A program made the position numbers and the translations under genes. This document shows positions 1 through 16,062 of a stretch of DNA of 16,062 bases, in pieces (position 1 is the stretch's first letter; each line of letters starts with the position of its first letter). Location: the NCBI GenBank assembly GCA_002269645.1, contig NIVC01001074.1:1-16062 (forward strand), read 5' to 3'. This DNA is from Macrostomum lignano (Eukaryota). Under the pieces are notes generated by a model. The model was not told where the DNA came from. It ran no database searches and worked only from the letters and a program-made list of their open reading frames with translations.

Positions 1-175
1 CCCAGGTTAGATTCCGTGCTCGACCTCGATTACTTCATTAATTTTGAACTTGTCGAATGATTTATACCCATGAGGCCAACCCCATTGTAAGACAGTCAGA
101 ACATCCTGCGTGGGCATACATGGCATTACTGCCTTGACCTTCGAATGAGCCTGAGACACTCTACTCGTATTTCAG

Positions 176-319
176 ACGGTTACACAACCCATCAGCTCTT
201 GTTCGAATGGGTGGCTAAGATTGACGAGAGGGTCGAGTTCAGCGATGACTTAGAACTGCCCGAGTTTGTCACGCCCCCAAATATCAGTACGGAGACTTGC
301 GTTGTGAAATATCTCACTG
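176..319 (+). CDS. Cys-loop anion channel subunit (GlyR/GluCl-like), internal exon A: extracellular domain up to loop C. Upstream exons lie outside the window or were not recognised.
   Basis: Acceptor tttcAG (174-175) and donor GTgagt (320). 144 nt, phase 1/1. Translation xGYTTHQLLFEW...LELPEF...CVVKYLTG parallels GlyR FGYTMNDLIFEW...LTLPQF...CTKHYNTG. Confidence 0.9.
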
Positions 320-492
320 GTGAGTTGCGGTTGCTGCTGGGGGTAATTCAGATGCAAAAAGTCATGGGAATCTCTAGAGTTATGGGGGACAGTGATAGAG
401 TTGGGAGGGAGAGCGGTAGCATCTGGGGAGGAGAAAGTGGGAGAGCTCAATTGTCAATGCGTCTTGCCGTGAACCTGGACATTCCTATTTAG

Positions 493-722
493 GCGACTAC
501 TCATATCTGCTGGTGACATTTTTACCTGAACCGAAAGTCGGGGTTCTACTTGATCCAGACCTACATACCCAGCATTCTGATTGTCATCCTGAGCTGGGTG
601 TCATTTTGGATCGACGTCAGAGCGGTGCCAGCCAGGATCAGTCTTGGCTTGCTGACGGTTCTCAGCATGACTACGCAGAGCTCTGGGCATTGGGACAGCT
701 GCCCAGGGTGTCCTACATCAAG
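493..722 (+). CDS. Cys-loop anion channel exon B (beta10, M1, M2, M2-M3 loop) with two compensating indels
   Basis: Acceptor tttAG (491-492) and donor GTttgt (723). Removing one T from T5 (519-523) and adding one G at G3 (685-687) gives [77 protein letters not shown]. The PAR motif marks an anion-selective channel. Confidence 0.9.
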
Positions 723-1596
723 GTTTGTTATGATTGGTATGATCTATACCGCTGTTTGTAAGGTTTCAGATATGGATTTTTCACCTTAAGACCAGGAGCT
801 CCCAATTGTGTCCGCTGTTGGTTTTCCCTACACAATGATTTTACTTCACTTTCTTCAATTCAATAGTAGTTCTACTAAATCTCTTTTGGATTAAGCGTAA
901 AGAGGAAGAAACTTTAACTGATTTATAAGCAGTCTAATCTGTCTAAAGACTGTCCGCAGCCATGATATAGAGAGGGGGGTTTAGAATGCAGCGGAAGAAC
1001 ATTCAGAATTGCCTCCGTGTTTTTCGTGACTCTTGTAGAGGTTGGCCGGCGTTATCGATTTTATCAGGCCTTCTGACTCCGCCTATTCATGGCACTGAAG
1101 CTGCTCTGTCAGCTTTAGGTGAGACTATTGAGGACCTCTTGAGCAGCTCACAGGGAATCTCAATCTGGCTATTGTCCTTTTTTGTCTTCTCAATTCTGGA
1201 TTAGAATTCGACTAAAGGAATGAAGTTTTTCTGGCTTGGTGCAAAGCCATGCAGCCCTCAACATTTTGCTGCTGAGGGGTCCTCTGTTCCGCTCCAGAGC
1301 CGGCCGAATAAGATTTGAGAAATTTTTCCTGACACGCAGAACTTTTTCTTCATTCTCGGATCCGTTAGCAGGAGAAAGCGGGAGCGAAGGCAGCAATTGT
1401 GAAAGTTTTCGTGACTAGGTCTGCCGTGTAAAGAACTATTGAGAAAGGCATTCTTTGAGACAAATTTGACAGTTCACTTGTAGGTTTTGGCATGTTAAAA
1501 TGTTAAAATGTCAGGCGAAAGCTCGAATTTTTGAGGAGATTCTAAAGATGAAGTTTTTTTTATCTACGCGGGAGTGTTGTTATAGTTGGCCTAAGT

Positions 1597-1646
1597 GGGT
1601 TGAAACGGGTTGAAACGGGTTGAAACGGGTTGAAACGGGTTGAAAC
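1597..1646. repeat. Perfect 10-bp tandem repeat (GGGTTGAAAC)x5, intronic
   Basis: Five exact head-to-tail copies read directly from the sequence, with no spacers. Confidence 0.97.
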
Positions 1647-1834
1647 GCACGGCGGATTCCACCCGCTGCAATTGTCGATGGCTGACTTCATTAAATAGAA
1701 AAACTCGTATGCATTATAAGTATTTAGTAAATTTTATACCACTTAACGCTGTCTGATTTGAAGAATATTTGATTCTCTGCAAAATGCTTATTATTAGTTA
1801 CTATTTTTTCGATTCACAAAATAAAGAGTTTTAG

Positions 1835-2462
1835 CCATAGACGATTTCTTAGATTTCATTCTTTCTTTCGTTCTCTAGCGGCTGGTGTGCTGGTAGGCAC
1901 GGTTGAACTTCGAAAGATCACATCCATTGTCGGCTGATTTTCCATGCAAGAATGGCATTCTTGCACTCTTTTGCGTGCAGGAATGGATGTCTATGGTAAA
2001 ATCTCACTGAAAAAGCATTAGGCGCAGAAATGCATTCCTGCACGGTTTTGTGCATTCCTGCACGATGAATCATCCGACAATGGAATTCCTTCACGTTCAC
2101 TCGTGCGTGAATATATCATTCTTATTTGATCCAGCGTGCAAGAATGCTTTGGAAGTCGCCATATGCGTGCAGAAATGCAAGTGTCTATGGTAAAAGCATC
2201 TTGAATTTGCATGTGCACTCCGTGCAGGAATGTCAATCGTGCAAGAATGTAATGCGCAATGTTTCTATATTTAGAATAACAGCCATAGACTACAAGCATA
2301 ATCTTCTTTCAATCGTGCAAGAATGTTCAGACTAGCTCGCGCATATTTTGTCTATGGTTCAAGTTTAACTCCACACCCCCAGCTCCACCCTTGTCTACTT
2401 TAGCCACACATGTTGGATCAAATAAGAATGGGAATCAAGCACTTTGACTTGTGCGTCTATGG
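1835..2462. mobile_element. Motif-rich region with nested inverted repeats; possibly a degenerate non-autonomous DNA transposon
   Basis: 9 exact TGCARGAATG copies in both orientations (1945-2325) and 6 GTCTATGG/CCATAGAC copies. Perfect inverted repeats at 1923-1933/2074-2084 (11 bp) and 2117-2133/2414-2430 (17 bp). Termini and TSD not identified. Confidence 0.45.
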
Positions 2463-3076
2463 CAAAAACCCTCGAGCGCTACGCGCACTCGTGTTTCAGC
2501 CATTGACGCACTCGTCAGCGTGCTAGATTCCTCCATTGAAGGGTTAGGCTCTCGTCCAATATTTGTTTTATCGGTTTCTCCTTCAAAAACGTTTTAATTG
2601 ACTTCAGAATAGTTTTCTGGTCAACACAAATGCCTTGCATAGGTGTTAAGGACTTCAGACTCGTTTTTAATGTCCGGAAGGTAATCTAGAACGTCATGAT
2701 GTTATATAGCTAATAGTGTCCTTCTCACTGATTGACGAAGGACAAAAATGCTGTCATTAATAAGAAAACTAAGTAGCTGATGTCAGATGAGGAAAGGGAT
2801 AAAAGAAACTTCCTTCATTCTCCTCAGCTCAAGCCGTACTTATGTACCCCAGCCACTTTCATTTCCCACTGGGATCAGCCGCCAGTCTCCAGCAGCTTTC
2901 GGGGGGGGGGGTGGATAATTCAATTTGGACCCAATTTTTAAGCCGGTCTCACTAGCAGCATCGGTTGGTTGACCTCCACCGCCCAAAGAAAAAGGCACTC
3001 ACTTCTTCTAGAAGGAATTTCCTACTTTTTGCGCCAGCCGACCCGTCGCAGACGTCTTTATTCGCTTGGCATGCAA

Positions 3077-3106
3077 GGGCAGGGGGAGGATGGGGGGAGA
3101 GAGGGG
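3077..3106 (+). other. Canonical G-quadruplex-forming motif (intronic)
   Basis: GGG-CA-GGGGG-AGGAT-GGGGGG-AGAGA-GGGG fits the G3+N1-7 x4 pattern. Formation not demonstrated. Confidence 0.4.
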
Positions 3107-3235
3107 AAACCCAATTCGGAGAGCTTTCTCTGACTGCACTGTTGGAAGCTGCTGCGAATTTTACTTAGCTAAGAAAGTGCCTTTACTCTCTTGTGAAGGG
3201 GATGGAGGTCGCCTGTCAATTTTCTACGTTCATAA

Positions 3236-3530
3236 GGGGTTTGTAGCCACGACTGAAAGGTCGGGGGTTCGATTCTCGACCCAATCGGAACAGCTTGTGT
3301 CCTTGAGCAAGACACTACTTGACTCTGCATTGCTTTAGTTCACCCAGCTGTAAAATGGGTGTCTGCAATAGCCTGGGGAACTGAGGGTGTGTGTGGCGAC
3401 CCCCCCCCCCAGTCCTTGGACTGAACAGCCGTACGCAGCCTTCAGATGCGCCGCGCAATAGCTGCGGCTGAGCTGTCGGTTGCACACCTGGCCCAATTGA
3501 GCAGGTGTAATCAAATACTATTATTATTAA
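3236..3530 (+). mobile_element. tRNA-derived SINE, copy 1 (A box deleted)
   Basis: B-box-like GGTTCGATTCTC, central CCTTGAGCAAG...CACCCAGCTGT block, 3' stem-loop and (TAT)n tail. Homologous along its length to the reverse complement of 15737-16033, with 5 differences in the last ~108 bp before the tail. Confidence 0.85.
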
Positions 3531-3842
3531 TTCACATAAGATCTTACAGCCTCCTTCGAACGTGACGCAAGCAGCCTATTATTCACCTGAGTACTTGCCG
3601 AAACTCACTCTGTTAGGATAAATTGATTGATAATCAAAGAATACTTTATAATTTTGACAGCCACTCATTTAAGTTGATGCATCCATCGAAATCTGATAAG
3701 TTCTCAGTTGTTAAAGTGGGGGCTGGCTAACTTGTCTAAACTTTTAACGTGGTTTGTTTTCCTAACAAAGAGCCAAGCTGAATGAACAGATCAGATAGAG
3801 AAGGGAGCAGGGAGACCGAGAAAAAATGGACGTGAATGCTGA

Positions 3843-4191
3843 GGGGAAATTGCTCTGACAATGTACTCCATCAACTCTGCCGAGTCCAGAAGCCAGAACT
3901 GGGCGAGAAGAAAGCCGGATGCTCCGCTTTGGGAGTCCAACTTCCTGTCCGTAGCTCCGGGTGAGCAAATAGAGGCTCAACTGCTTTTTGTTCAGCAAAA
4001 GCTGACCAGAGAATTTGCTTTGTCATTCAACCTTTCTGTTGGCTGCCCGTATTGCTGGAGCGGCTACGATCGTGTTTACAACTTTTTATAGTTTCTACGT
4101 GTCAACAGAAATGCATTCAGAGTTGGCGATGAAGCTCCAGGAAATGCTGGCTGGGGAAGAGAAAGCAAAAGATGCAAAGTTTAAGCTATAG
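3843..4191 (+). pseudogene. Possible cryptic or degraded coding fragment with a hydrophobic segment, inside the channel intron
   Basis: ORF 3861-4091 plus a +1 frame (4006-4191) reading FLLAARIAGAATIVFTTFYSFYVSTEMHSELAMKLQEMLAGEEKAKDAKFKL*. Looks protein-like but needs a frameshift, and no identity is established. Confidence 0.25.
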
Positions 4192-4339
4192 AGCGCTTTG
4201 ACTGCTTTGCCGTTTGCGTCACGAGATTTTTGAGATGAGCCCTTCTGTAGCTTTTCCGAGGATATCTAAGGGATCGTATCAAGAAATGTAGACCAATGAT
4301 TGTAAATGACACAGCACAAACCCTCACTGTCCCAATCAG

Positions 4340-4528
4340 GCCATAGACGTGTGGATGTCCACCTGCCTGGTGTTCGTGTTCGGTGCCCTGATCGAGTACG
4401 CCATTGCGAACGTGCTGGCCCGGCAGCACAGCACTCTGGAACGCTGGGAGAACCTGCGCAGGATGTTGGACGAGCGGAGTGCAGCGCTGGCCGAGGCAAG
4501 AGACAATAGCGTTGGATCTAACAAGAGG
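4340..4528 (+). CDS. Cys-loop anion channel exon C (M3 and start of the intracellular loop)
   Basis: Acceptor atcAG (4338-4339) and donor GTatgc (4529). AIDVWMSTCLVFVFGALIEYAIANVL continues ...VSYIK| in phase 0, giving the conserved SYxKAIDxW motif. Implies a 3617-bp intron (723-4339). Confidence 0.93.
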
Positions 4529-4834
4529 GTATGCCGTTAAGTGTCATTTAATTAAAACTTCTTAACAGTTTGTCACCTGGGAAACCTGGCGCTTTCGTCG
4601 ATAGTCAAATATGAAGTACTTCTTTTGTACCTACACTTTTTGAAGTCTTCCATACTATTTTAGTGCCGTGTAAATCACTTACCGAGTTGGCTCGGGACTC
4701 ATTGACTCAGAGGTCGGCAAAATTTTAATGTCAGGGGGCCGAAATATAATCTAGATCATTGCTGCGAGCCAGCTGAGAGAGTAAAATAGAGGAAATGGGA
4801 GAAAAAGAGTAAAAAAGAGGAGATAAGAGATGAC

Positions 4835-5163
4835 AGAGGAGAGGAGAGGAGAGGAGAGGAGAGGAGAGGAGAGGAGAGGAGAGGAGAGGAGAGGAGAGGA
4901 GAGGAGAGGAGAGGAGAGGAGAGGAGAGGAGAGGAGAGGAGAGGAGAGGAGAGGAGAGGAGAGGAGAGGAGAGGAGAGGAGAGAGAGGAGGAGAGGAGAG
5001 GAGAGGAGAGGAGAGGAGAGAGAGGAGAGGAGAGGAGAGGAGAGGAGAGGAGAGGAGAGGAGAGAGGAGAGGAGAGGAGAGGAGAGGAGAGGAGAGGAGA
5101 GGAGAGAGGAGAGGAGAGGAGAGGAGAGGAGAGGAGAGGAGAGGAGAGGAGAGGAGAGGAGAG
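4835..5163. repeat. (AGAGG)n pentanucleotide microsatellite, ~329-bp pure purine tract in intron 4529-5220
   Basis: Read directly. Occasional shortened units between about 4980 and 5110. Confidence 0.98.
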
Positions 5164-5220
5164 TCTGCTTGTACCTGACAAAGACAATCTCACAAGACAT
5201 TTGTTGCATTCAATTTTCAG

Positions 5221-5580
5221 AACCGCTCTCAGGCCATCCCGATGATGACTTTCATGAACCGAGAGGCGGACGCTGCTACCGGGAGCTGCGAGACGGATAC
5301 CCTTATTAATAATTCTCGAAGCGTCGGTGCTGGCGCGGCTGGCGCCACCTCGGGTGATGGCGGCGGTGGGATCGGCGGCCTGCGCAGACGGGTCGCCTTC
5401 CAGTCTGTCGGTAGTGGCGACTCCGACAGTCCATTCGGTGGGAGCCACGGCAGCCTGCAGGAGGAGGAGTTCGTTAGCAGCGCTGAGATGATCGACAGGA
5501 TCTCGAGAGCTGCGTTTCCTCTGTCGTTCGGCATGTTTAACCTGGGTTATTGGGTGTACTATGTGTACATTGCTGAGTAA
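5221..5580 (+). CDS. Cys-loop anion channel terminal exon D (intracellular loop and M4, stop TAA)
   Basis: Acceptor ttttcAG (5219-5220), phase 0, in frame with ORF 5242-5580. Ends IDRISRAAFPLSFGMFNLGYWVYYVYIAE*, matching the M4 consensus IDxxSRxxFPxxFxxFNxxYW. Confidence 0.9.
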   Translation, partial: NRSQAIPMMTFMNREADAATGSCETDTLINNSRSVGAGAAGATSGDGGGGIGGLRRRVAFQSVGSGDSDSPFGGSHGSLQEEEFVSSAEMIDRISRAAFPLSFGMFNLGYWVYYVYIAE

Positions 5581-5780
5581 TTGTGTGTTGCTACTCTTCA
5601 ATTTGATTTGTGTATTGATACCAATGGTTAAAACTCGACGTTGCATGCATTCTACGTCTTTTTACTCGAGCGACGAAATTTAAATTCGTAGTGGAGTCTT
5701 TTGGCGTGAGTGGGTGCGCAACAAGTGTTATAACATCTATTCGTGTTGCTTAGCTGTTGCTTAGAAACCAATGTTGCGGT

Positions 5781-6106
5781 GGAGGATCCACTCTGATAGA
5801 ATGACAGGGTCCTGATGACCAACGAACACGTGAGCGTATGGGGAGGAGAGAGCAGTACGAGCTAGCATCTGGGGAGGAGAGAGCAGTACGAGCTAGCATC
5901 TGGGGAGGAGAGAGCAGTACGAGCTAGCATCTGGGGAGGAGAGAGCAGTACGAGCTAGCATCTGGGAGGAGAGAGCAGTACGAGCTAGCATCAGGGCAGG
6001 AGAGAGCCGGAGAGCCCATGGTCAGCAGCCGCTTGTCGTTAGTCTTGTCGGCGGAGGATCCACTCTGATAGAAGATCCGGGTCCTGACGACCAACGAGCA
6101 CGCGAG
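5781..6106. repeat. Pair of 54-bp imperfect direct repeats (5781-5834 and 6053-6106) bracketing a minisatellite
   Basis: The first 21 bp (GGAGGATCCACTCTGATAGAA) are identical; 7 mismatches over 54 bp. Confidence 0.9.
5840..6007. repeat. 31-bp minisatellite GGGGAGGAGAGAGCAGTACGAGCTAGCATCT, about 5.4 units
   Basis: Exact units at 5840, 5871, 5902 and 5933, a 30-bp unit at 5964 and a partial unit at 5994. Confidence 0.97.
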
Positions 6107-6216
6107 ATGAGTGAGGAAGCTCTTGGCTAACTTATTCGGTCTGGATCCGCCACGGAAATTTTTTTCTTATTTGTTTTGAAAACGCGAGTTTAGTAACGTT
6201 TAAGAGTTTTAAGTTC

Positions 6217-6222
6217 AATAAA
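6217..6222 (+). promoter_or_regulatory. Candidate polyadenylation signal of the channel gene
   Basis: First AATAAA I find downstream of the stop at 5580. Usage not shown. Confidence 0.35.
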
Positions 6223-6449
6223 GTCAAAGCAGAGTAACTGTGGAAAAAACTGCAAAAATTTATCAACCAAATGAAATCAAGCAAAAGAAACTTTGCTCTG
6301 ACTTTTGAATATTTGTCATTTCCATTGTTGCTACGTTGCTAATGACTTGAGCAGTCTGTAGAAGTATATACTCTACACAAATTTTTGCTTGTAGTTAGTT
6401 GTTCTTTGGTCGCTACGCATAAATGCGATATAAATACTCATAGATCATC

Positions 6450-6933
6450 AAATATAGCTTTTTGCAGCCCATTTGGGCTTACGCGCATTGAATTTAATCC
6501 AAGATAGGTTTGCCAATGACGTTTGCTGCATTTCTGCAACGTCAACAAAGGGTTCGTCTTGGCGATTGCCACCTTTCACAGGCGACCTAAGCCAGAAGTG
6601 GTTTCAACACGCTGATGGATGCTGTAAAGTCATCTTTCTTCTATATTCAGCAACCTTGCAATGTCCTTTGGGTGTTCACCTCTGTTGAGTGCTTTGATCA
6701 CAAGCCAGTGGCATACGTTCGACAACCTAGCATGGTTCACAATTCTGGGCTGATCTTGCTCCTCCGCAACAGTTGCAAATAAAGCTATGGACCAAATGGA
6801 TGCTTGTTGGACTAAATTAAGTGCCGCTGTGGCAGCCTTGCTGCCATAGACAAAAGCTCCGTTACATTGGCAAACCTATCTTGGATTAAATTAAATGCGC
6901 GTAAGCCCTAATGGGCTGCAAAAAGCCATATTT
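6450..6933. mobile_element. MITE-like element, ~484 bp, with 69-bp inverted repeats
   Basis: 6450-6518 matches the reverse complement of 6865-6933 at 66/69. Non-coding interior. No unambiguous TSD. Confidence 0.75.
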
Positions 6934-7790
6934 CTCGAACATTGAAATATCAGTTGCAAAGTGCTAGGCAGTTCTGTAGTTGCAGCAAACCTTAAAGTCC
7001 AATAAAAAGACATTCATATACGAGTACTCAATCTCAAACCTTTTTTATCTAATGGTTCATCTATTGATCTGCAGTCACGTACGCATTGGTGGCTTGTCAA
7101 AGCTGTCAAAGTCTCATTGGAAACTTAATAATAAAACAAGTGTTTTCCAGTTTAAACGGAAAGGCGAGCGCTTCGCTCAAGAAAAGAAGATTTCACATCA
7201 AGAGTTGTAAAATAATTCAAACTGAAAGTCCTTTTGCTTCTTTTGTTTTTATTGAAGCCATGCCTGACGTATTTAGGCAGGCGGAATGAGATGATAAATA
7301 AGTGGAAACGGTCGCACGCAGCTTATTTTCAACAGGGCTTCTTTCTCACGGGCTGCCAGTTTCTGCAGCCGAGCCTGCAAGGCATTGTGCGAAAGGCATG
7401 TCACTCTAAATGGGCCCCCTGTTATGTTCTCGCGCCTCTGTTAATTGGCAAATCACCTGTTCCATTTCAGCACCCTGCGGCGCTACCTCATCACTCTCCT
7501 TCGCAACCCCCCATTGTCGCAGTGGTACTTGAAACGTTGGCCAGGAGTGCACAGGCAGGCCAATTCGAGCGCAAGCGATGCAGGCAATGCACTCAGCATC
7601 CATTAGTCTAAGTGGGACACTCCAGGCTCGAGTGGAGCCTTTTGCCTTCTATTATTTGCCTATCTCGTACTCAATTTTGTTCTTTTAATCTAATGAGGCA
7701 ATGGTTGCATTGATGCTTATTGCAGTCCTCGAAGAACAATGTGTGACAAAATCCACAGGGGCTTATAATGGGTTTAGACATTCGGAAAAT

Positions 7791-7798
7791 TATATAAA
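7791..7798 (+). promoter_or_regulatory. Candidate TATA box of the FN2/TSR gene
   Basis: TATATAAA lies about 67 bp upstream of ATG 7865, with no intervening ATG. Confidence 0.4.
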
Positions 7799-7864
7799 CT
7801 GCACCGCTACGCTGCTACGCTCGAATCGAAGACAAATACATCATTGAATAAAAAAGACTCGAAG

Positions 7865-10800
7865 ATGATCCTGACAGTTGGACAGCGTCTGCTGCCCCTG
7901 CTTCTCTTGCTGCTGATTCAGATTTCCCTAGCGCTCAGCTGCAATCCCCCCAACTCAACTTCAGACAGCAGAGTCACAATCTCTACCACTGGGGGCGGCT
8001 CAGGCAGCGTCTGCTATTTCCCATTTGCGGACGGCTCCAACACTTACAACGATTGCACCGAGTATTGCTCGAGCGGCCAGTGCCGCTTCTGGTGCGCGAC
8101 CTCCTGCGACTACGGCGCCAGCAGCACCCTGTGGCGATACTGCAACTATCGGCTGGCGAACCTGACGCAGGAAAACTGTTCCGGTCTGGCAACCGCGGCT
8201 CAGAGTTCCGAGCCGTCTGTACTCTACGCTGGCCTCGGCTCCGGGACCAAGTGTGTGTTCCCGTTTCTGTATAACGGCAAGTGTCACTATGACTGCCTGA
8301 CCACTACAACTGAGCCGTGGTGCGCCACCACTGCAGAGAGCGCTATCATCGATAACAACTTCAAATACTGCGCTTATACAATTTCTGGTGCGGCATCGCA
8401 GAGCTGCGCCCGGCTTAACGCATCAGAGCCGGCCTACATCACGCCGCAGCTGAGCAGCTATTCCGTCATATACACCCAGGCTGATCCTTATGCTAACTGT
8501 ACTTTTCCATTCTACTATAATGGAAAGTGTTACGACGACTGCACCAGTGGGGCCGGCTTTCCCTGGTACCTGATCTGGTGCAGTACAGAGCGCTACTACC
8601 AGCCCAATAAGCGCATCCGATTCTGCCCCTACTACAGAAGCTACGTTGGCATCAAGACACTCGCGCTACGTTGGGGCTTTTACAGGATCTACCTGCAGAC
8701 TGGCTGCGGCAGCGGCGGAAGTTTTTGTAACGCTAGCATTGCCGCGGCGAATTCCACAGCTCCACTGGCAGCTTACGGTTCGCGACGACTGGCTCTGACC
8801 GCTCCAAGCACCGAAGCCGCAGTCATGTGGGAGGCCATGCCTCAGCCTAACGGTTTCTTCATCTTCAGAAGCGTTGTGCCATGCTACACCCCGGCTGACG
8901 CTTGGTCCTCCGATGTTGCAGACGCCACTTTTGAGAACATAACAAAAGAACGCGAATTTTGGATTGTTGACTCAGCCGGTGGCAGTGGCGGCAGTGGACT
9001 GTACACAATAAAATCTTCGTTCAACGATACTGCCGGATACTTCCTGGCGCCAAGCACTGTCAGCGGCTACTCTGTGCTCACTCTGCAATCAAGCACTCCT
9101 ACTGTATGGCTATTCGAAGAGATCTCCGATCTGGAGAAGTCCAATTTGAACGTATGCGACCAGCTAGACATCAACGGCGGCTGGTGCAACTGGACCGACT
9201 GGAGTACAGTGAGCAGCGAGTGGCAGATGCGCGAACGGAACTGTAGCTGTCCGAGCGTTGCTGGCAACGGCACAACATGCGAGGGAAACAGCACCGAATG
9301 GCGGGCAGTAGTCAACGGGACTTGGTGCCCGTGGTCTGCCTACGCACCGGCAGGCGGAGGTTTTGCCACCCGGACTCGCGCCTGCGCTTGCCCGGCACCG
9401 GCAAACAGCGGATTGGACTGTCCTGGCAGCGGAAATGACACGGGTTTGGTAACAAATGGTAGCTGGTGCGGATGGAGCGCCTTCTCCATGGCTTCAGGCG
9501 TCGGCACTAGGACACGTCAGTGCAACTGCAGCGCTCCAGCGTATGGCGGTACAGACTGCCTTGGGTCTGCCATCGACTCAGGAGCTGTCGTTAACGGCAG
9601 CTGGTGCGGTTGGAGCCCGTTCTCTGTGATTTCTGGAGTTGGAACTAGAACGCGACAGTGCAACTGCAGCGCTCCGGCGTACGGCGGCAACGACTGCGTC
9701 GGCTCCGCTAGCGATTCCGGTACGGCAGTGAACGGCACCTGGTGCGATTGGGGTGCATTCGCAGTGTCCAGCGGCATCGGGACTAGAACTCGTCAGTGCA
9801 ACTGTAGCTCACCATCGTACGGCGGAGTTGATTGTCCCGGTTCTGGCACTGACTCTGGTACGGTCGTTAATGGTACCTGGTGCGGATGGAGCGCCTATTC
9901 AGTGACAGGAGGGGTTGGAACAAGAACACGACAATGCAACTGCAGCAAACCAGCGTACGGCGGTGTCGACTGTGCAGGACCAGCAACCGACTCTGGCACA
10001 GTCATCAATGGCAGCTGGTGTGGCTGGAGTGCCTTCTCTGTGGCTGGTGGCGTCGGGACGAGAACGCGTCAGTGCAACTGCAGTGCAGCTGAGTACGGCG
10101 GCGTGGACTGTGTTGGTTCGGCAACCGAATCGGGCTCCGCAGTGGACGGCAGCTGGTGCGCATGGAGCGCTTATCAAGTCAACGGGGAGTTTAGCAACCG
10201 TTCGCGACTTTGCAACTGCTCAGCGCCCGCGTTCGGCGGCCAACCCTGTCCAGGCAATGCTAGTGAGACTCAGAGGGTAGTTAACGGCACCTGGTGTCCA
10301 TGGGGACCCTACATAGTGTCTGGCGCTAATAGTACCAGAGCGAGAAGTTGCAACTGCTCCGCCCCGGCATACGGCGGTGCCGACTGCATCGGAGCTGCCA
10401 ATGAGACTCAGGTGGTGATTAATGGTAGTTGGTGTGCCTGGAGTAGCTACACCCTGTCACCTGGAGGAGACTACGGTACACGAACTCGGGCGTGCAACTG
10501 TCCGGCTGTGGCCTTCGGGGCACCGACTGTCCGGAAGTGGAAACGACACCGGATTGAAGCAGGACGCAGCCTGGTGCGCCTGGTCCAGCTACATTGTCGA
10601 CCCTGCCACCGGCGTTGGCACGCGGAACCGCAGCTGCGCCTGTCCTGCTGTGCCAGCCCACGGAGGCTCAGCTGTCTGCTCGGGAAACTCGACCGAGTCT
10701 GGCCTCTCTATAAACGCGACCTGGTGCGCCTGGTCCGCCTACGCAGCCGACGGGTCTGGCAACGAGACCCGACAGCGAAACTGCAGCTGTCCGACTGGCG

Positions 10801-11551
10801 GCGACTTTGGAGGTTCAACTGTCTGCCCCGGCTCGGCTGTGGACACGCGCCAGATTGTCAACGGTAGCTGGTGCGCCTGGAGCAACTACACCGTCGAAGG
10901 CGGCTGGGGCGTCCGGAATCGAACCTGCGAGTGCCCACCGCGTCAGTACTGGGAGAGACGTGTCAAGGTAACACGACAGATTGGCTGGCTCAGGTAAATG
11001 GCAGTTGGTGCGCCTGGTCTGAACTCGTATACACCTATGGTGCGGTGTCGCGCACCCGACAGTGCAACTGTTCCGCACCCAATGACATCGGAGTCGCCTG
11101 CTCGGGCGTCTCAGTCGAGCACTATCCGTGCAATGCAACCGCCTGCGCCACCACGACCCCAGCGTCCACCACCGGCGCTGCATCAACGAGTTCTGCTCCA
11201 GCAGCCTGGTGTCCTTGGGGCAATTTCACAGCCGGGCCGTTCAACAGCGGCTTCATGTACCGCCAGCGCCTGTGCAACTGTCCAGCTCCGTCAGCCGCCG
11301 AATCAGTCACGTGTCCGGGAAGCGGTCTGGAGAACGTCACCTGCCGCATAGCTGGCTGCGAGCGCATCATTGCAATACTCAAAAGCAAAGGCGCTGCTGG
11401 CGCAGACATCAGCCAGTTGTCCAGCTTCCGCAAGCTCGTCGGCCTCGGCGCTGTCGTGTGCTCGGCCGCCGCGCTGTCGCTGGCCATCGGTGCTGTTCTC
11501 ACGCTGTGCAAAGCGGCCGGCAGCGGGACCGGCGCCACCGCGCCAGCCTGA
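7865..11551 (+). CDS. Intronless type I membrane glycoprotein: signal peptide, 3 FN2-like domains, possible beta-trefoil, 15 TSR-like repeats, TM. About 1229 aa after repairing three single-base deletions.
   Basis: ATG 7865 (aagATG; the track's TTG start at 7844 is unlikely). Signal peptide MILTVGQRLLPLLLLLLIQISLA. CxFPF...WC...C domains at 8012-8143, 8252-8371 and 8498-8626. WCxW...RxRxCxC repeats at 9173-11359. Hydrophobic LVGLGAVVCSAAALSLAIGAVLTLC at 11435-11509. Adding G at 10517-20, G at 10533-34 and C at 10934-36 joins ORFs 7844, 10422 and 10871 and restores the repeat consensus. Confidence 0.85.
9173..11359 (+). repeat. Coding tandem array of 15 TSR-like units; exact 138-nt period from 9455 to 10421
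   Basis: Unit starts at 9455, 9593, 9731, 9869, 10007, 10145, 10283 and 10421 are each 138 nt apart. Confidence 0.92.
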
Positions 11552-12113
11552 GGCCTTGGCGCCATTTTTGACCAAACCAATAAGAACGATAAAAACTGTG
11601 AACAAGTCTGACGATCGAAATTTTATTACGCAACACTCTGATTGAGTTGCATTGCTCACATTAGAAAAGCAAGTACGTACATCCTTGAGTTTTCAAAATA
11701 TCTCATTTTGTCGGTTTCTCTTTTAAAATATTATTTTTTCCTAAAACATCTCAAGAAAACAAAAAATTAATTTAAGACCTACCTCAGACTACTGTCTACT
11801 GTAAGTAACAGGGGTGAATATACATTTAGAAAAGCACATTTTTGCTACATCTTTTTTTATAGTTGGAAGATCTTTGTGTAAATCAATGCGCCTTCTGTAT
11901 CTCTATTTTATCTATTCAAGTTTTTAAGCTATTTTAGGAGGCAGATTCAGCGAAGAAAGACAATAAGGAGACCTGAGGTTTGCATTTTTTCTGCATCAAA
12001 ATTGTTTTTACCTTTGATAGGAGGCAGACCCTATGTCCATATTTTGATATGACTTGCCTTTCTGATGGCTCTGCTGATAATCATAAAGCTTTTTGTTTAG
12101 AAAACTAAGATTC

Positions 12114-13565
12114 TTAACAGTAGAAAGACCATGGGGTGTATTTCAAATACACACATTCTTTCTTTTGTCTGGATCTCCAAAAATATTAAACCAATTGCCA
12201 TGAAAATCCAGAACACGGGCTAAAATTTTCTGCTCTATTCGATGAAGCAACTTCGAGAATCACGAAAAATCGGCATCGTCGAGATATTCAACGATTTTCC
12301 ACGGGGTGTCTGGTGGCAAAATCCACCAACATTGGCAAAATTTTTCTGCTCACAAAATCTCATCATGAAACCACGTCGACTCAACAAACTATGCATATCA
12401 GTCGTAGAGGCCTTTCTTCTCAGCATCCCAGACACCAGGGTCCCATTCAACACCGTCTGGAGCATCGGCGGCGACCGTCGGACCTTCAACAAAAGCACCC
12501 GATCGGAATTTCAGAGACGGTTGCGTTCCCAAACTGAAATGGAAGAATCCTCTTCTGCATGCAGCATTCCGTCAGTAGACACAATCGGTGAAAGATATGG
12601 ACGATGGCGACCCTCTAGACTGACCTGTAGACATACAAGCGACCTTCGGGTCGTTCAACGGAGTGCCACCACGCTGCCCTGACGAGCTGGCACCCCCAAC
12701 ATCGTGGTCTGTAACTCTTCAACTTAATATGGTGCAAAAGCATTGTATAATATGCAAACATATCTGGTTTGGTGCCTTGATAGAAAAATCACGATGTTTG
12801 GGGTGCCAGCGCGTCAGGTCCGCGTGGTGGCACTCCGTTGAAGGTCCCGAAGGTCGTCCGGATAGAGCTGAATGGTGAAAATGATGCAGGACCATTGTAT
12901 AATATGCAGATATGCAGACATGCCTGGTTTGGTGCCTTGATAAAAAAGCAGGATGTTGGCATTGACGGTGTCAGCTCGTCGGGGCCGCGTGGTGGCACTC
13001 CGTTGAACGACCCGAAGGTCGCTTGTATGTCTACAGGTCAGTCTAGAGGGTCGCTATCGTCCATTTCATTCACCGATTATCTCTATTGACGGAATGCTGC
13101 ATGCAAAAGAGGATTCTTCAATTTCAGTTTTGGGAACGCAGCCGTCTCTGAGATGCCGATCGGGTGCTTTTGTTGAAGGTCTCGACGGTCGCCGCCGATG
13201 CTCCAGACGGTGATGAAGGGGACCCTGATGCCTGGAATTCTGAGAACAAAGGCGTCTACGACAGATAGACCCAGATTATTGAGCCAATATGGATTCACCA
13301 TAAAGGTTTATACAGTGTAGTGTTGGTTGTCCTTGCCACCAGTGTCTTCGACAAGAATCGTTGAATATCTCGACGATGCCGACGTCGGATGACATTGAAA
13401 GTTAGTTAGTCAGAAAGGGCGGAAAATTTTGATAAATATGACGGACTTTTGCGAAAATCGGTAATTCGGTTTGCGAGCTATCGTGAAATGGGTTGTGTGC
13501 ATTTTTAATACACCCCCCGTGGTCTTTCCCCAGGGGGAAAAATAGCGTGGTCTTTCTACTGTTAA
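12114..13565. mobile_element. TTAA-flanked non-autonomous fold-back DNA transposon (piggyBac-like ends), 1444 bp between the TTAA sites
   Basis: TTAA (12114-17) + CAGTAGAAAGACCA (12118-31) ... TGGTCTTTCTACTG (13548-61) + TTAA (13562-65). Internal inverted arms: 12270-12296/13356-13382 (27 bp perfect) and 12397-12694/12967-13266 (about 92% by manual alignment, with a 68-bp perfect core). Confidence 0.8.
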
Positions 13566-14729
13566 CGTAATTTTCCCGTTAAACCTGCCTCCTAAATTTT
13601 TTCAAGTTACTTACTTTCCCGTCCCTCAAGTTGAGCAGTCCTTGGGTAGGGAATGATCTTGCTCTACGGTAGGCTCAGAACATCAGTTCAGCCAGCTGTT
13701 TTGCCAGAATTTGGATGCAGTCAAAGTTGGAGTTGGACGAGAGGAGGCTGCCTGCAGAAAGGAGGCTGGAGGTATGGAGAGGAGAGAAGAGAAATGCTCT
13801 CTCTACAATCGACAGCAAAGTAGGATGTAGAACACTGCCTGACTGACAGGCGTGAGTTTTTTCCAGCTGGGCCGAAGTTGCCATGGCCACAATAGTTCGG
13901 CAAGCATTCGCAGAACAACAAGCCTTGACTTGCAGCAAGAAATCCAGATAAAAAGCCTGAAATTAATAGCGCCGGCATAAATTTATAAAAATCGAGCCTA
14001 CCCAATAATTGTCTCTCGACATGGGAAGAATTTCTCACGAACTGCAGTCAACGATGGAATGATTATTGTCAAGAGAACCAAAACGACTATATGCGAGAGG
14101 CTGCACCGCAAGAGGCCCTTGAAGGCACTCAAGATCCTGCTAGCTGCAATGCATTCAGCCCGATATTTTGCCGAGTGGGTGGTGCGCAATTAGCATTAAT
14201 AATCTGCCATATCGCTTTTTTCCCATTCTGGCTCAGATCCTTCCGTCCCCTCCCATCTCGGGCAGCCTGTGGACGCGACCTGCGTACATTGGCTCCTTAA
14301 ACAAAACAGATCCAGGGAAGAGAGTGAGGGCGAGGGGCGGGCAGAGAAAATGAAAGAGCCTGAGCAGCAGAGAGTGTCCCACAATTTAGGACAGCAGGAT
14401 GCGGGACTCGCGTCCTCTCCACCCCCTCCCTCAGGCGCGGCTTTTCCCCATTTTGTTTTGCATCGTCGCACACGGCTCAGGTGAGGACGGGGTTGGATTG
14501 TTGGGACAGCAAACAAAGTGTGGGCTGGCTCTGCCCCTGCCAAGCAAGTATAAAACCGGCACGTAAGTAACGATATAAGCCTCGTTGATGGCTTATAATC
14601 CTAGCACAGATGTAGGAGCGATCCAGTTGCCTGCTCAACTTGCATAGGATGCAAAGCAGTCTATTGCTCAGCGGCATGGAGACAGATGCATGCAGACAGC
14701 TATAGAGAAGGCCCATCGCAGCAAGCACA

Positions 14730-15512
14730 ATGACGGAGTCTCGCGCCCTGACTCGCAAGCAGAGCGTCATCATCGGTTTGTGCGCTCTGTGCCTGACCTT
14801 CGTCTTGCTGATGACAGCTGGTCAGACCGGCTCCGTCAGAGGGGTCGCAAACTGAGTCAGGAAATTGCCTGGCTGCCGTTCCGGCTCGTCAATAGCTACA
14901 GCGGTGGTGATTTTAACGATACAAATCGTCGAGACAACTCGTGGAGGAAGAATCTTCGACCGACGACCTCAACAGGGCTCCGATTTGATCCCTTCAACGA
15001 ATTGGCCGCTATGCTGGTGCCGAGCTCAAAGTCAGGCAACTCGACTGGTTGGAAGCGATTCCAGATGGTCTACCCGCAGCTTTACCGACATCTCACCAAG
15101 CTGACCGAATCGCCAGCCGCGGTTGCTCCAAATCTTCTAAACGCGCCAAACAACACCGCAAAGAATCTGTCTGCCTGCCGCCGTCCGCCAGACAAGAACC
15201 TGGCCCACCTGTTGAACCAGCCGACTCCAGCTTTCCGTTTGCTCGACCGACTTACCGAGGCGGCTTCTGGTCGCCCAGGAGCTGCTGGCCGCCGCTGTCG
15301 AAAACCGCCGTCCTGGTGCCGTACCGGAACCGAAGCGAGAATCTCGACAAGTTCGTGCCCTATATGCAGACCCTGCTGCAGCAGCAGAACATCGCCTACG
15401 GCATCTTCGTGATTGAGCAGGCGAATACGAAGCTGTTCAACCGCGCCAAACTGCTCAACGTTGGCTTCCGAGTGGCCAACAGTTTGCCAAGTTTGACTGC
15501 TTCGTGCTGCAC
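14730..15512 (+). CDS. GT7 family beta-1,4-galactosyltransferase / beta-1,4-GalNAc-transferase-like, first coding exon; the gene continues beyond the window
   Basis: Type II anchor MTESRALTRKQSVIIGLCALCLTFVLLMTAG, a long stem, then GGFWSPRSC..KTAVLVPYRNR, YGIFVIEQ, FNRAKLLNVGF and FDCFVLH followed by donor GTaagt (15513), just before the expected DVD motif. Needs three +1 repairs (about 14841-44, about 15252-53, about 15487-90). Confidence 0.88.
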
Positions 15513-15736
15513 GTAAGTAGATCTTTATGAATCCGTGGCTTCGTATCATTCTAGTTAATTAGCTCGTAAGGAGGGCTTTTTGGACACTGCAAAAATCACA
15601 AAGTCAAAACCAGAATGTGCTTTGTTTTGTACTTGTCTACAGTAGGCCTAACATCTAAATGACCCAAGTGGAAGGGGTTTTTATTGACTATTTGAAAATG
15701 CATGCATGTGAAAAATAATCGTCAAGATGCTTGAAC

Positions 15737-16033
15737 TAATAATAGTAATAATAATTGATTACACCTGCTCAGTTGGGCCAGGTGTGCAACGACAGCTCAG
15801 CCGCAGCTATAGCGGGGCGCATCTGAAGGCTGCGTACGGCTGTTGAGTCCAAGGACTGGGGGTCGCCACATACACCCTCAATTACACCAGCCCATCATAC
15901 AGCTGGGTGAACTGAAACAATTCAGAGTTAAGTATCTTTGCTCAAGGAAACAGATTGTTTCAATTGGATCGGGAATCGAACCCCGACCTTCAAGTCGTGA
16001 GTCCGATGCTCTAACCTCTAGGCTACAAAACCC
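15737..16033 (-). mobile_element. tRNA-derived SINE, copy 2 (intact A and B boxes), in the glycosyltransferase intron
   Basis: The minus strand reads GGGTTTTGTAGCCTAGAGGTTAGAGC (A box) ... GGTTCGATTCC (B box), then the same body as 3236-3530, a 3' stem-loop and an (ATT)n-like tail. Confidence 0.88.
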
Positions 16034-16062
16034 TTCCTTTACACCTGACTGATCTGTTGTGT

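Follow-up and report, generated by a model that had tools for sequence, protein, structure and literature searches.

Folding of thrombospondin type-1 repeats (TSRs) in animals is thought to depend on a framework of six cysteines, C1 to C6, and on the O-fucose that POFUT2 adds to the CSxxC loop, within the consensus C-x-x-(S/T)-C-x-x-G between C1 and C2; in thrombospondin and properdin, arrays of these domains are rod-like. Here, we describe a gene in a stretch of 16,062 nucleotides of the flatworm Macrostomum lignano (GenBank assembly GCA_002269645.1, contig NIVC01001074.1, positions 1 to 16,062 of the forward strand; hereafter, the window) in which 15 units are, judged by sequence and by predicted fold, true TSR homologues, 13 of them having four cysteines. 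We consider it likely that these are divergent TSRs of the thrombospondin/properdin type, with a disulfide between positions C6 and C26 of the unit, and that they make up the extracellular stalk of a single-pass membrane protein. The gene and its parts are the following (amino acid positions numbered from W5 to G38 are those of the repeat unit).

7865..11551, + strand: whole gene, intronless, for a type I membrane protein of ~1229 amino acids after three frame corrections (open reading frames (ORFs), frame analysis and M. lignano homologues)
7865..7939, + strand: predicted signal peptide, MILTVGQRLLPLLLLLLIQISLALS (N-terminal hydrophobic Kyte-Doolittle peak; cleavage site inferred by eye)
8006..8629, + strand: three fibronectin type II (FN2) domains (Pfam PF00040, E 9.7e-18, 64.3 bits, three stretches)
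8630..9169, + strand: conserved domain of ~180 amino acids, without a family match, predicted all-beta (40-42% identity to the homologues P0001 and P0002)
9170..10993, + strand: units 1-13, four-Cys TSR modules, W5 C6 W8 ... R20 x R22 x C24 x C26 ... G33 xx C36 x G38
9452..10417, + strand: units 3-9 within these, the seven most regular copies of 46 amino acids, with a 138-bp period (Tandem Repeats Finder)
10994..11146, + strand: unit 14, six-Cys TSR, consisting of the four-Cys core and a C-terminal CNATAC
11147..11206, + strand: linker rich in Thr, Ser, Ala and Pro between units 14 and 15, ATTTPASTTGAASTSSAPAA (translation)
11207..11359, + strand: unit 15, six-Cys TSR, consisting of the core and CRIAGC
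11435..11509, + strand: predicted transmembrane (TM) helix, LVGLGAVVCSAAALSLAIGAVLTLC, amino acids 1192-1216, followed by a 13-amino-acid tail and the stop codon at 11549-11551 (hydropathy)

From N- to C-terminus, the product is thus composed of a signal peptide, three FN2 domains, the ~180-amino-acid domain, the 15 TSRs, the TM helix and the 13-amino-acid tail. With the FN2 domains distal and the TSRs proximal to the membrane, the architecture predicted from the sequence is that of a type I membrane protein; no internal hydropathy peak other than the TM segment rises above 1.6. The ~180-amino-acid domain (8630-9169) has no match in Pfam; compared with P0001 and P0002, it has three W-containing motifs and at least two conserved cysteines, and its AlphaFold2 (AF2) model, from a multiple sequence alignment (MSA) of three sequences, is unusable at a mean confidence (pLDDT) of 39.5; judged by eye, it might be a beta-trefoil.

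All 15 units, obtained by splitting the translation of 9170-11359 at WCxW, open with this motif, of which 0.14 occurrences are expected by composition (over 2000 shuffles, the mean was 0.13 and the highest count 3). The length is 46 amino acids in units 3-9 and 13 and 47-50 in the remaining ones; at the DNA level, Tandem Repeats Finder reports a period of 138, with 4.6-5.2 copies and 70-71% matches. The initial annotation of this DNA had placed the array at 9173-11359, and its coordinates are exact, where 9173 corresponds to the Asn that opens NGGWC (unit 1) and 11359 to the final base of the last Cys codon in unit 15. Its counts hold as well: units 1-13 have exactly four cysteines and only units 14 and 15 have six, N-G/A-S/T stands immediately before the Trp motif in 11 of the 15 units, and N-C-S occurs in 10. 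Over the 740 amino acids of the TSR stalk, 39 N-glycan sequons were found by motif count.

We have built a profile from 23 four-Cys units, of which the window supplied 11 and two M. lignano homologues the other 12. Invariant over the 23 are W5, C6, W8, R20, C24, C26, G33, C36 and G38; conservation of R22 is 90% or more, and position 11 is F, Y or W. As in TSRs, there is a Trp ladder on strand A and an Arg ladder (RxR) on strand B. Searched against 1.84 billion representative proteins, the profile had 2162 matches with E<=1e-3, of which 97 reached E<=1e-30, and almost all of the top 150 matches outside M. lignano are canonical multi-TSR proteins with six cysteines and the pattern W..W..CSxxC..RxRxC. 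Against the PDB, it matched TSR2/3 of human thrombospondin-1 (TSP-1; 1LSL, 3R6B, 7YYK) with E 6e-18 to 1e-15 and 35-38 bits per domain, and further the TSRs of the proteins C8, UNC5, BAI1, C6/C7, ADAMTS13 and properdin. In the HMMER alignment to TSP-1, where the row of the unit profile reads vngsWCaWSaytv.....sggvgtRtRsCnCsapaygGldCpGssnetg, a gap of five residues stands opposite CSVTC, and the unit stops before xCxxxxC (C5/C6). The alignment to TSR2/3 bears out the earlier proposal that RxRxC and GGxxC are retained while CSxxC and the terminal pair of cysteines are absent.

The predicted fold, too, is that of a TSR, in agreement with the initial annotation. The best AF2 model of three units (pLDDT 82.3; MSA of 16 sliding triplets) has strands at unit positions 12-14, 17-22, 24-27 and 40-45, a pattern that fits the modelled unit to a TSR with a tight A-B hairpin, strand B at 17-27 and strand C at 40-45. 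Foldseek matched the model to TSRs of properdin and TSP-1 in the PDB, with a probability of 1.0 and E 2e-6 to 4e-5, and a single-domain match to the TSR of C8 alpha has a root-mean-square deviation of 2.6 A over 45 columns.

Family models respond unevenly. A piece of nine-plus units reaches 40.9 bits with PF00090 (TSP_1), for which the cut-off is 21.6, and 13 of the 23 units match it singly at E<=1, the best at E 2.1e-5. TSP1_spondin (PF19028) matches one of the 23 units (E 0.019) and TSP1_CFP_C comes in at E 0.59, both negligible, and none of the 23 units matches PF19035. The initial annotation had named an existing family with this Cys pattern, or a predicted fold other than a TSR, as what would count against it. 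Both checks favour it: no Pfam family covers the four-Cys pattern, PF00090 being the sole match to the units, and a weak one, and the predicted fold is a TSR. For the M. lignano homologues, the precomputed Pfam entries name fn2 alone. As to the subgroups, the units have the Cys positions of the thrombospondin/properdin TSRs, with C24 (C3) and C36 (C4) invariant. They differ from the spondin/CCN subgroup, C3 being present and the N-terminal Cys lying inside the Trp motif, and units 1-13, with four cysteines and with C1, C2, C5 and C6 missing, depart from the six cysteines and three disulfides of the TSP1 superfamily.

Set beside a TSR of TSP-1 or properdin (PF00090, PDB 1LSL), the unit of the window has the same WxxWxx(W/F/Y) ladder on strand A and RxR ladder on strand B, the same RxRxC...GGxxC (C3-C4) pair, the same preceding V-N/D-G-x-W and the same elongated, three-stranded fold. 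Unlike these TSRs, it has neither the CSxxC(G) loop, with C1, C2 and the O-fucose site, nor a C-terminal CxxxxC bearing C5 and C6, so that both disulfides between strands I and III are lost; it carries the additional pair of W-C and CxC, and it measures 46 amino acids as against ~55. Spondin and CCN TSRs (PF19028, PF19035; C1-C4) also fix the N-terminal end of the domain by a Cys of strand I, but there that Cys precedes the Trp motif and is bonded to C4, with C3 absent, whereas in the window C3 is present and the partner would be the new Cys at C3+2. According to Xu et al. (bioRxiv 10.1101/779553), every solved TSP1 domain retains the two C layers that join strands I and III, the N-terminal layer being the only one to vary. 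At the level of sequence and model only, the module of the window appears as an exception to the I-III layer rule, and the change of cysteines mapped in its units fits the variable N-terminal layer of that study (bioRxiv 10.1101/779553).

The initial annotation had suggested that the cysteines of W-C and CxC form a disulfide with each other. We have collected TSR units from the best 150 representative proteins, 1338 in all, anchored on W-x-x-[WFY] and [RKQ]-x-[RK]-x-C; this motif-anchored count replaces an earlier one by columns of the hidden Markov model, which gave 94 spurious "CxC only" units from misaligned short B-C loops. The 1338 units are distributed as follows.

Cys at W+1 and Cys at C3+2: 35 units
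Cys at W+1, no Cys at C3+2: 1 unit
no Cys at W+1, Cys at C3+2: 1 unit
neither: 1301 units

The co-occurrence (Fisher's test, 8e-67; counts without M. lignano, 18/1/1/1301) strongly supports the suggested disulfide. The pair is found in 11 proteins, each less than 50% identical to the others, and in three Cys backgrounds. Moreover, in the metatranscriptomic proteins P0008 and P0039, four-Cys units (WC...CxC) alternate with two-Cys units (WG...CxN), in which both cysteines are lost together. Because the two-Cys units hold only C24 and C36, these must pair, and C6 is left to C26 by elimination; the sequences thus point to C6 and C26 as disulfide partners. Residues R20, R22, C24 and C26 are spaced i+2, as in strand B, and from this periodicity we infer that the C6-C26 cystine would lie beyond C24-C36, adding a further layer to the stack at the domain's N-terminal end.

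The W-C/CxC pair is not a novelty of this lineage, since canonical TSRs here and there in many metazoan phyla have it too, as a putative fourth disulfide. Single eight-Cys units of this kind are present in SCO-spondin of Latimeria, a SCO-spondin-like protein of Branchiostoma, coadhesin of Lingula, coadhesin-like proteins of Haliotis and Watersipora, hemicentin-like proteins of Lineus and Plakobranchus, and an ADAMTS-like protein of the sponge Corticium. They share with the window a Cys directly after the first Trp and a Cys at C3+2 (e.g., ...GGWCEWSDW...RRRNCSCQGP...), but they keep the six canonical cysteines and carry the pair in one or two units per protein, whereas in the window it is in every unit. 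On sequence comparison, the pair is an old, recurrent add-on, and what is particular to the array of the window is its presence in all 15 units together with the loss of both I-III disulfides in 13 of the 15.

Other TSRs poor in cysteine exist. P0008 and P0039, from marine metatranscriptomes, have an identical four-Cys unit, VNG[NT]WCxWxxW...RxRxCxCP...GGxxCxG, without C1, C2, C5 and C6; they differ in the alternation with two-Cys units and in the rest of the protein, which is unrelated and has no FN2 and no TM segment. Both have a large Cys-rich N-terminal region, then the TSR array, then three units of another two-Cys type (GYTxW...CIQQxLG). P0008 (L001) is encoded on a JGI 3300018797 contig (5.1 kb; gene 30-4997), and a homologue search with it returned only P0008 itself and no named relatives. 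In P0007 and P0019, arrays of two-Cys TSRs have C3 and C4 only, so TSRs can exist with C3-C4 alone. The module of Helobdella robusta T1FB46 (P0011) is another four-Cys type, with one Cys in the A-B loop, C3, C4 and one C-terminal Cys; its units keep one I-III disulfide in place of the W-C/CxC pair. Cys-poor TSRs seem to be widespread in invertebrates and under-annotated, going by these sequences. Of the shortened TSR subtype that the initial annotation had seen in the window, a distinct Cys framework that Pfam does not cover stands, but Cys-poor TSRs, with two or with another set of four cysteines, exist elsewhere.

In units 14 and 15, a CxxxxC stands where C5/C6 would be, with C1 and C2 absent, and the last two units of the orthologue-like M. 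lignano protein P0001 are built likewise (CNVSSC in unit 9 and CTLNGC in unit 10). Considering parity, the two additional cysteines of units 14 and 15 probably bond with each other. The linker at 11147-11206 is probably a mucin-like, O-glycosylated hinge. Units 14 and 15 each precede a linker and not a further unit, and this adjacency of capped units to linkers suggests that, in the tandem part, the following unit replaces the C5/C6-like cap; the last unit of P0002, however, has no CxxxxC cap, which weakens the idea.

In structural terms, each 46-amino-acid unit keeps a ladder of W5, W8 and the aromatic residue at 11 on strand A and R20 and R22 on strand B. It would also keep the C24-C36 disulfide, with the C6-C26 disulfide at its N-terminal end taking the place of the lost pair of I-III disulfides at the opposite, C-terminal end. 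Stacked head to tail, the units would probably form a stiff, heavily N-glycosylated rod, by analogy with the rod-like TSR arrays of thrombospondin and properdin, on which our reading of the array as an extended stalk is based. The W-C-x-W motif of all 15 units retains WxxW and would permit C-mannosylation, as had been noted; the segment C-x-x-(S/T)-C-x-x-G is deleted in 15 of 15 units and, with CxxS/TC lost, the POFUT2 site would be gone. FN2 domains classically bind collagen or gelatin, and the rod probably holds these domains and the ~180-amino-acid domain off the membrane, for adhesion to matrix or cells.

When residues 1-885 were searched against 5.8 billion proteins, only two close clusters were found, both of M. 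lignano: P0001 (Mlig009063) and P0002 (Mlig014498), with 42-46% identity over 91-99% of the query. The architecture is common to P0001, P0002 and P0165, and in the databases searched the combination of FN2, TSR and TM appears restricted to Macrostomum. The P0002 gene is a single exon; its locus is not syntenic with the window in the flanks, and the coding parts have 66-68% DNA identity. One M. lignano homologue is named "Fibronectin type-II domain-containing protein". The name "Protein-tyrosine-phosphatase" of P0001 (UniRef A0A1I8FYL0) is supported neither by its sequence (FN2, TSR and TM) nor by its Pfam content. Unit 8 of P0001 is shorter than in the cluster member P0165, which suggests an error in the P0001 gene model. 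Mlig-ap2, an adhesive protein of M. lignano with TSRs, was considered and is a different, giant secreted protein.

The gene starts with an ATG at 7865 on the + strand and stops at 11549-11551, apparently without introns. As assembled, it is split into an ORF at 7844-10867, with the first stop at 10865-10867, and an ORF at 10871-11551. Three-frame translation revealed that the repeat array is not one open frame: there are three one-base slips, all in one direction, each amounting to one missing base, and the original frame is regained after the third.

~10519-10522, + strand: slip 1, inside unit 10, GGGG TTCGGGGCACC
~10531-10534, + strand: slip 2, inside unit 10, CCGG TGTCCGGAAG (across slips 1 and 2, AFG / GTDCP / GSGNDTG are read in successive frames)
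~10938-10943, + strand: slip 3, inside unit 13, CCACCGCGTCA (CECPP / SVLGETC are read in different frames in the three-frame display)

Units 10 and 13 cross slips, and units 11-12 are in another frame, neither of which the initial annotation had noted. With an x inserted for every slip, the translation comes to 1229 residues.

Several observations weigh against our interpretation of the gene. One of five AF2 models was confident, the others having pLDDT from 59 to 46, the input was a shallow MSA of paralogous repeats, and the multi-domain TM-scores given by Foldseek are low (0.2-0.3). The co-occurrence counts are not phylogenetically independent. Literature searches gave no description of the four-Cys module of the window or of its protein family with FN2, TSR and TM. 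The three slips interrupt the gene copy in the window, so the full protein may not come from this locus. Finally, a typical single unit has 18.4 bits with PF00090, beneath the gathering threshold of 21.6; this score, along with weak spurious matches of a frame-shifted piece to RANK_CRD_2 and FXa_inhibition, would suit some other small, Cys-rich extracellular module (EGF-, TNFR- or granulin-like) with a chance likeness to TSRs. We have rejected this identity as extremely improbable, because the profile matches TSP-1 TSRs in the PDB (E 6e-18), besides thousands of TSR proteins, because Foldseek assigns the AF2 fold to properdin and TSP-1 with a probability of 1.0, and because the spacings of WxxW, RxR and GGxxC are conserved. 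If the units are TSRs, their cysteines could still be wired otherwise, as C6-C24 with C26-C36 or between units, or C6 and C26 could be free or metal-binding thiols. CxC motifs are capable of metal binding, and, with an eight-Cys SCO-spondin TSR as the query, the W-C/CxC pair is in no solved TSR among five aligned PDB matches. Such wiring is nevertheless improbable: in the two-Cys units, C24 and C36 are the sole cysteines and hence paired together, C6 and C26 are gained or lost jointly in 1336 of the 1338 units, as partners would be, and the protein would be extracellular, where cysteines are, as a rule, paired as cystines.

The slips themselves could be real, the locus then being a pseudogene or a truncated allele whose product, if any, would be a secreted protein of 1001 amino acids with a scrambled tail and no TM anchor. 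In favour of this, three one-base slips are packed into 425 bp, the assembled ORF terminates at 10865-10867, and the protein of this locus is missing from the collection of 5.8 billion, an absence that an unannotated genome explains equally well. All three slips, however, are in G/C runs or a GC-rich context, in the part of the window richest in GC (0.62-0.64), and indels in such runs are a typical mark of long-read consensus errors. The corrected frames of units 10-13 run for ~140 codons without a stop and keep every invariant W, C, R and G, and the downstream frame, which carries units 14-15 and the TM helix, is unbroken up to 11551. For these reasons, we favour assembly indels over pseudogenisation with good confidence and regard a pseudogene or truncated allele as rather unlikely; if real, pseudogene status is possibly of young age.

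Outside the TSR gene, the window looks eukaryotic: the GC fraction of coding sequence is ~0.56-0.63, as against ~0.42-0.47 elsewhere, and micro- and minisatellites are present. The other features are the following.

1597-1647: perfect (GGGTTGAAAC)x5 repeat, upstream of the TSR gene
4835-5163: (AGAGG) microsatellite, ~65 copies, upstream of the TSR gene
5839-6007: 31-bp minisatellite, 5.5 copies, upstream of the TSR gene
5242-5580, + strand: ORF, probably the final exon of an upstream gene, with a C-terminus similar to the fourth transmembrane segment (TM4) and the terminal part of a Cys-loop neurotransmitter-gated ion channel (PF02932, E 1.6e-4, under the gathering score)
15049-15516, + strand: ORF for the N-terminal region of a glycosyltransferase of family 7, beta-1,4-galactosyltransferase-like (PF13733, E 1.7e-24), by its sequence an exon of a downstream gene

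One might tentatively go further and regard the 46-amino-acid unit as a third structural class of TSR, in which the I-III disulfides are dispensable and a doubled N-terminal cystine layer and head-to-tail packing provide stability, but we find this doubtful. Were it true, the unit would be a self-capping rod module that needs no POFUT2 and is under-detected by current domain models, and many invertebrate TSR proteins would be mis-annotated. Pfam-based annotation does miss the four-Cys units, as the M. lignano homologues are annotated as FN2 proteins only, and the protein with FN2, TSR and TM is a candidate for a lineage-specific adhesion receptor. The four-Cys module is a genuine, if modest, variation on a well-known domain, and the array widens the known variability of a well-studied fold without overturning its current understanding; being devoid of both I-III disulfides and of the fucosylation site, it would be a natural minimal TSR and a probe of the stability of the Cys-Trp-Arg (CWR) stack.

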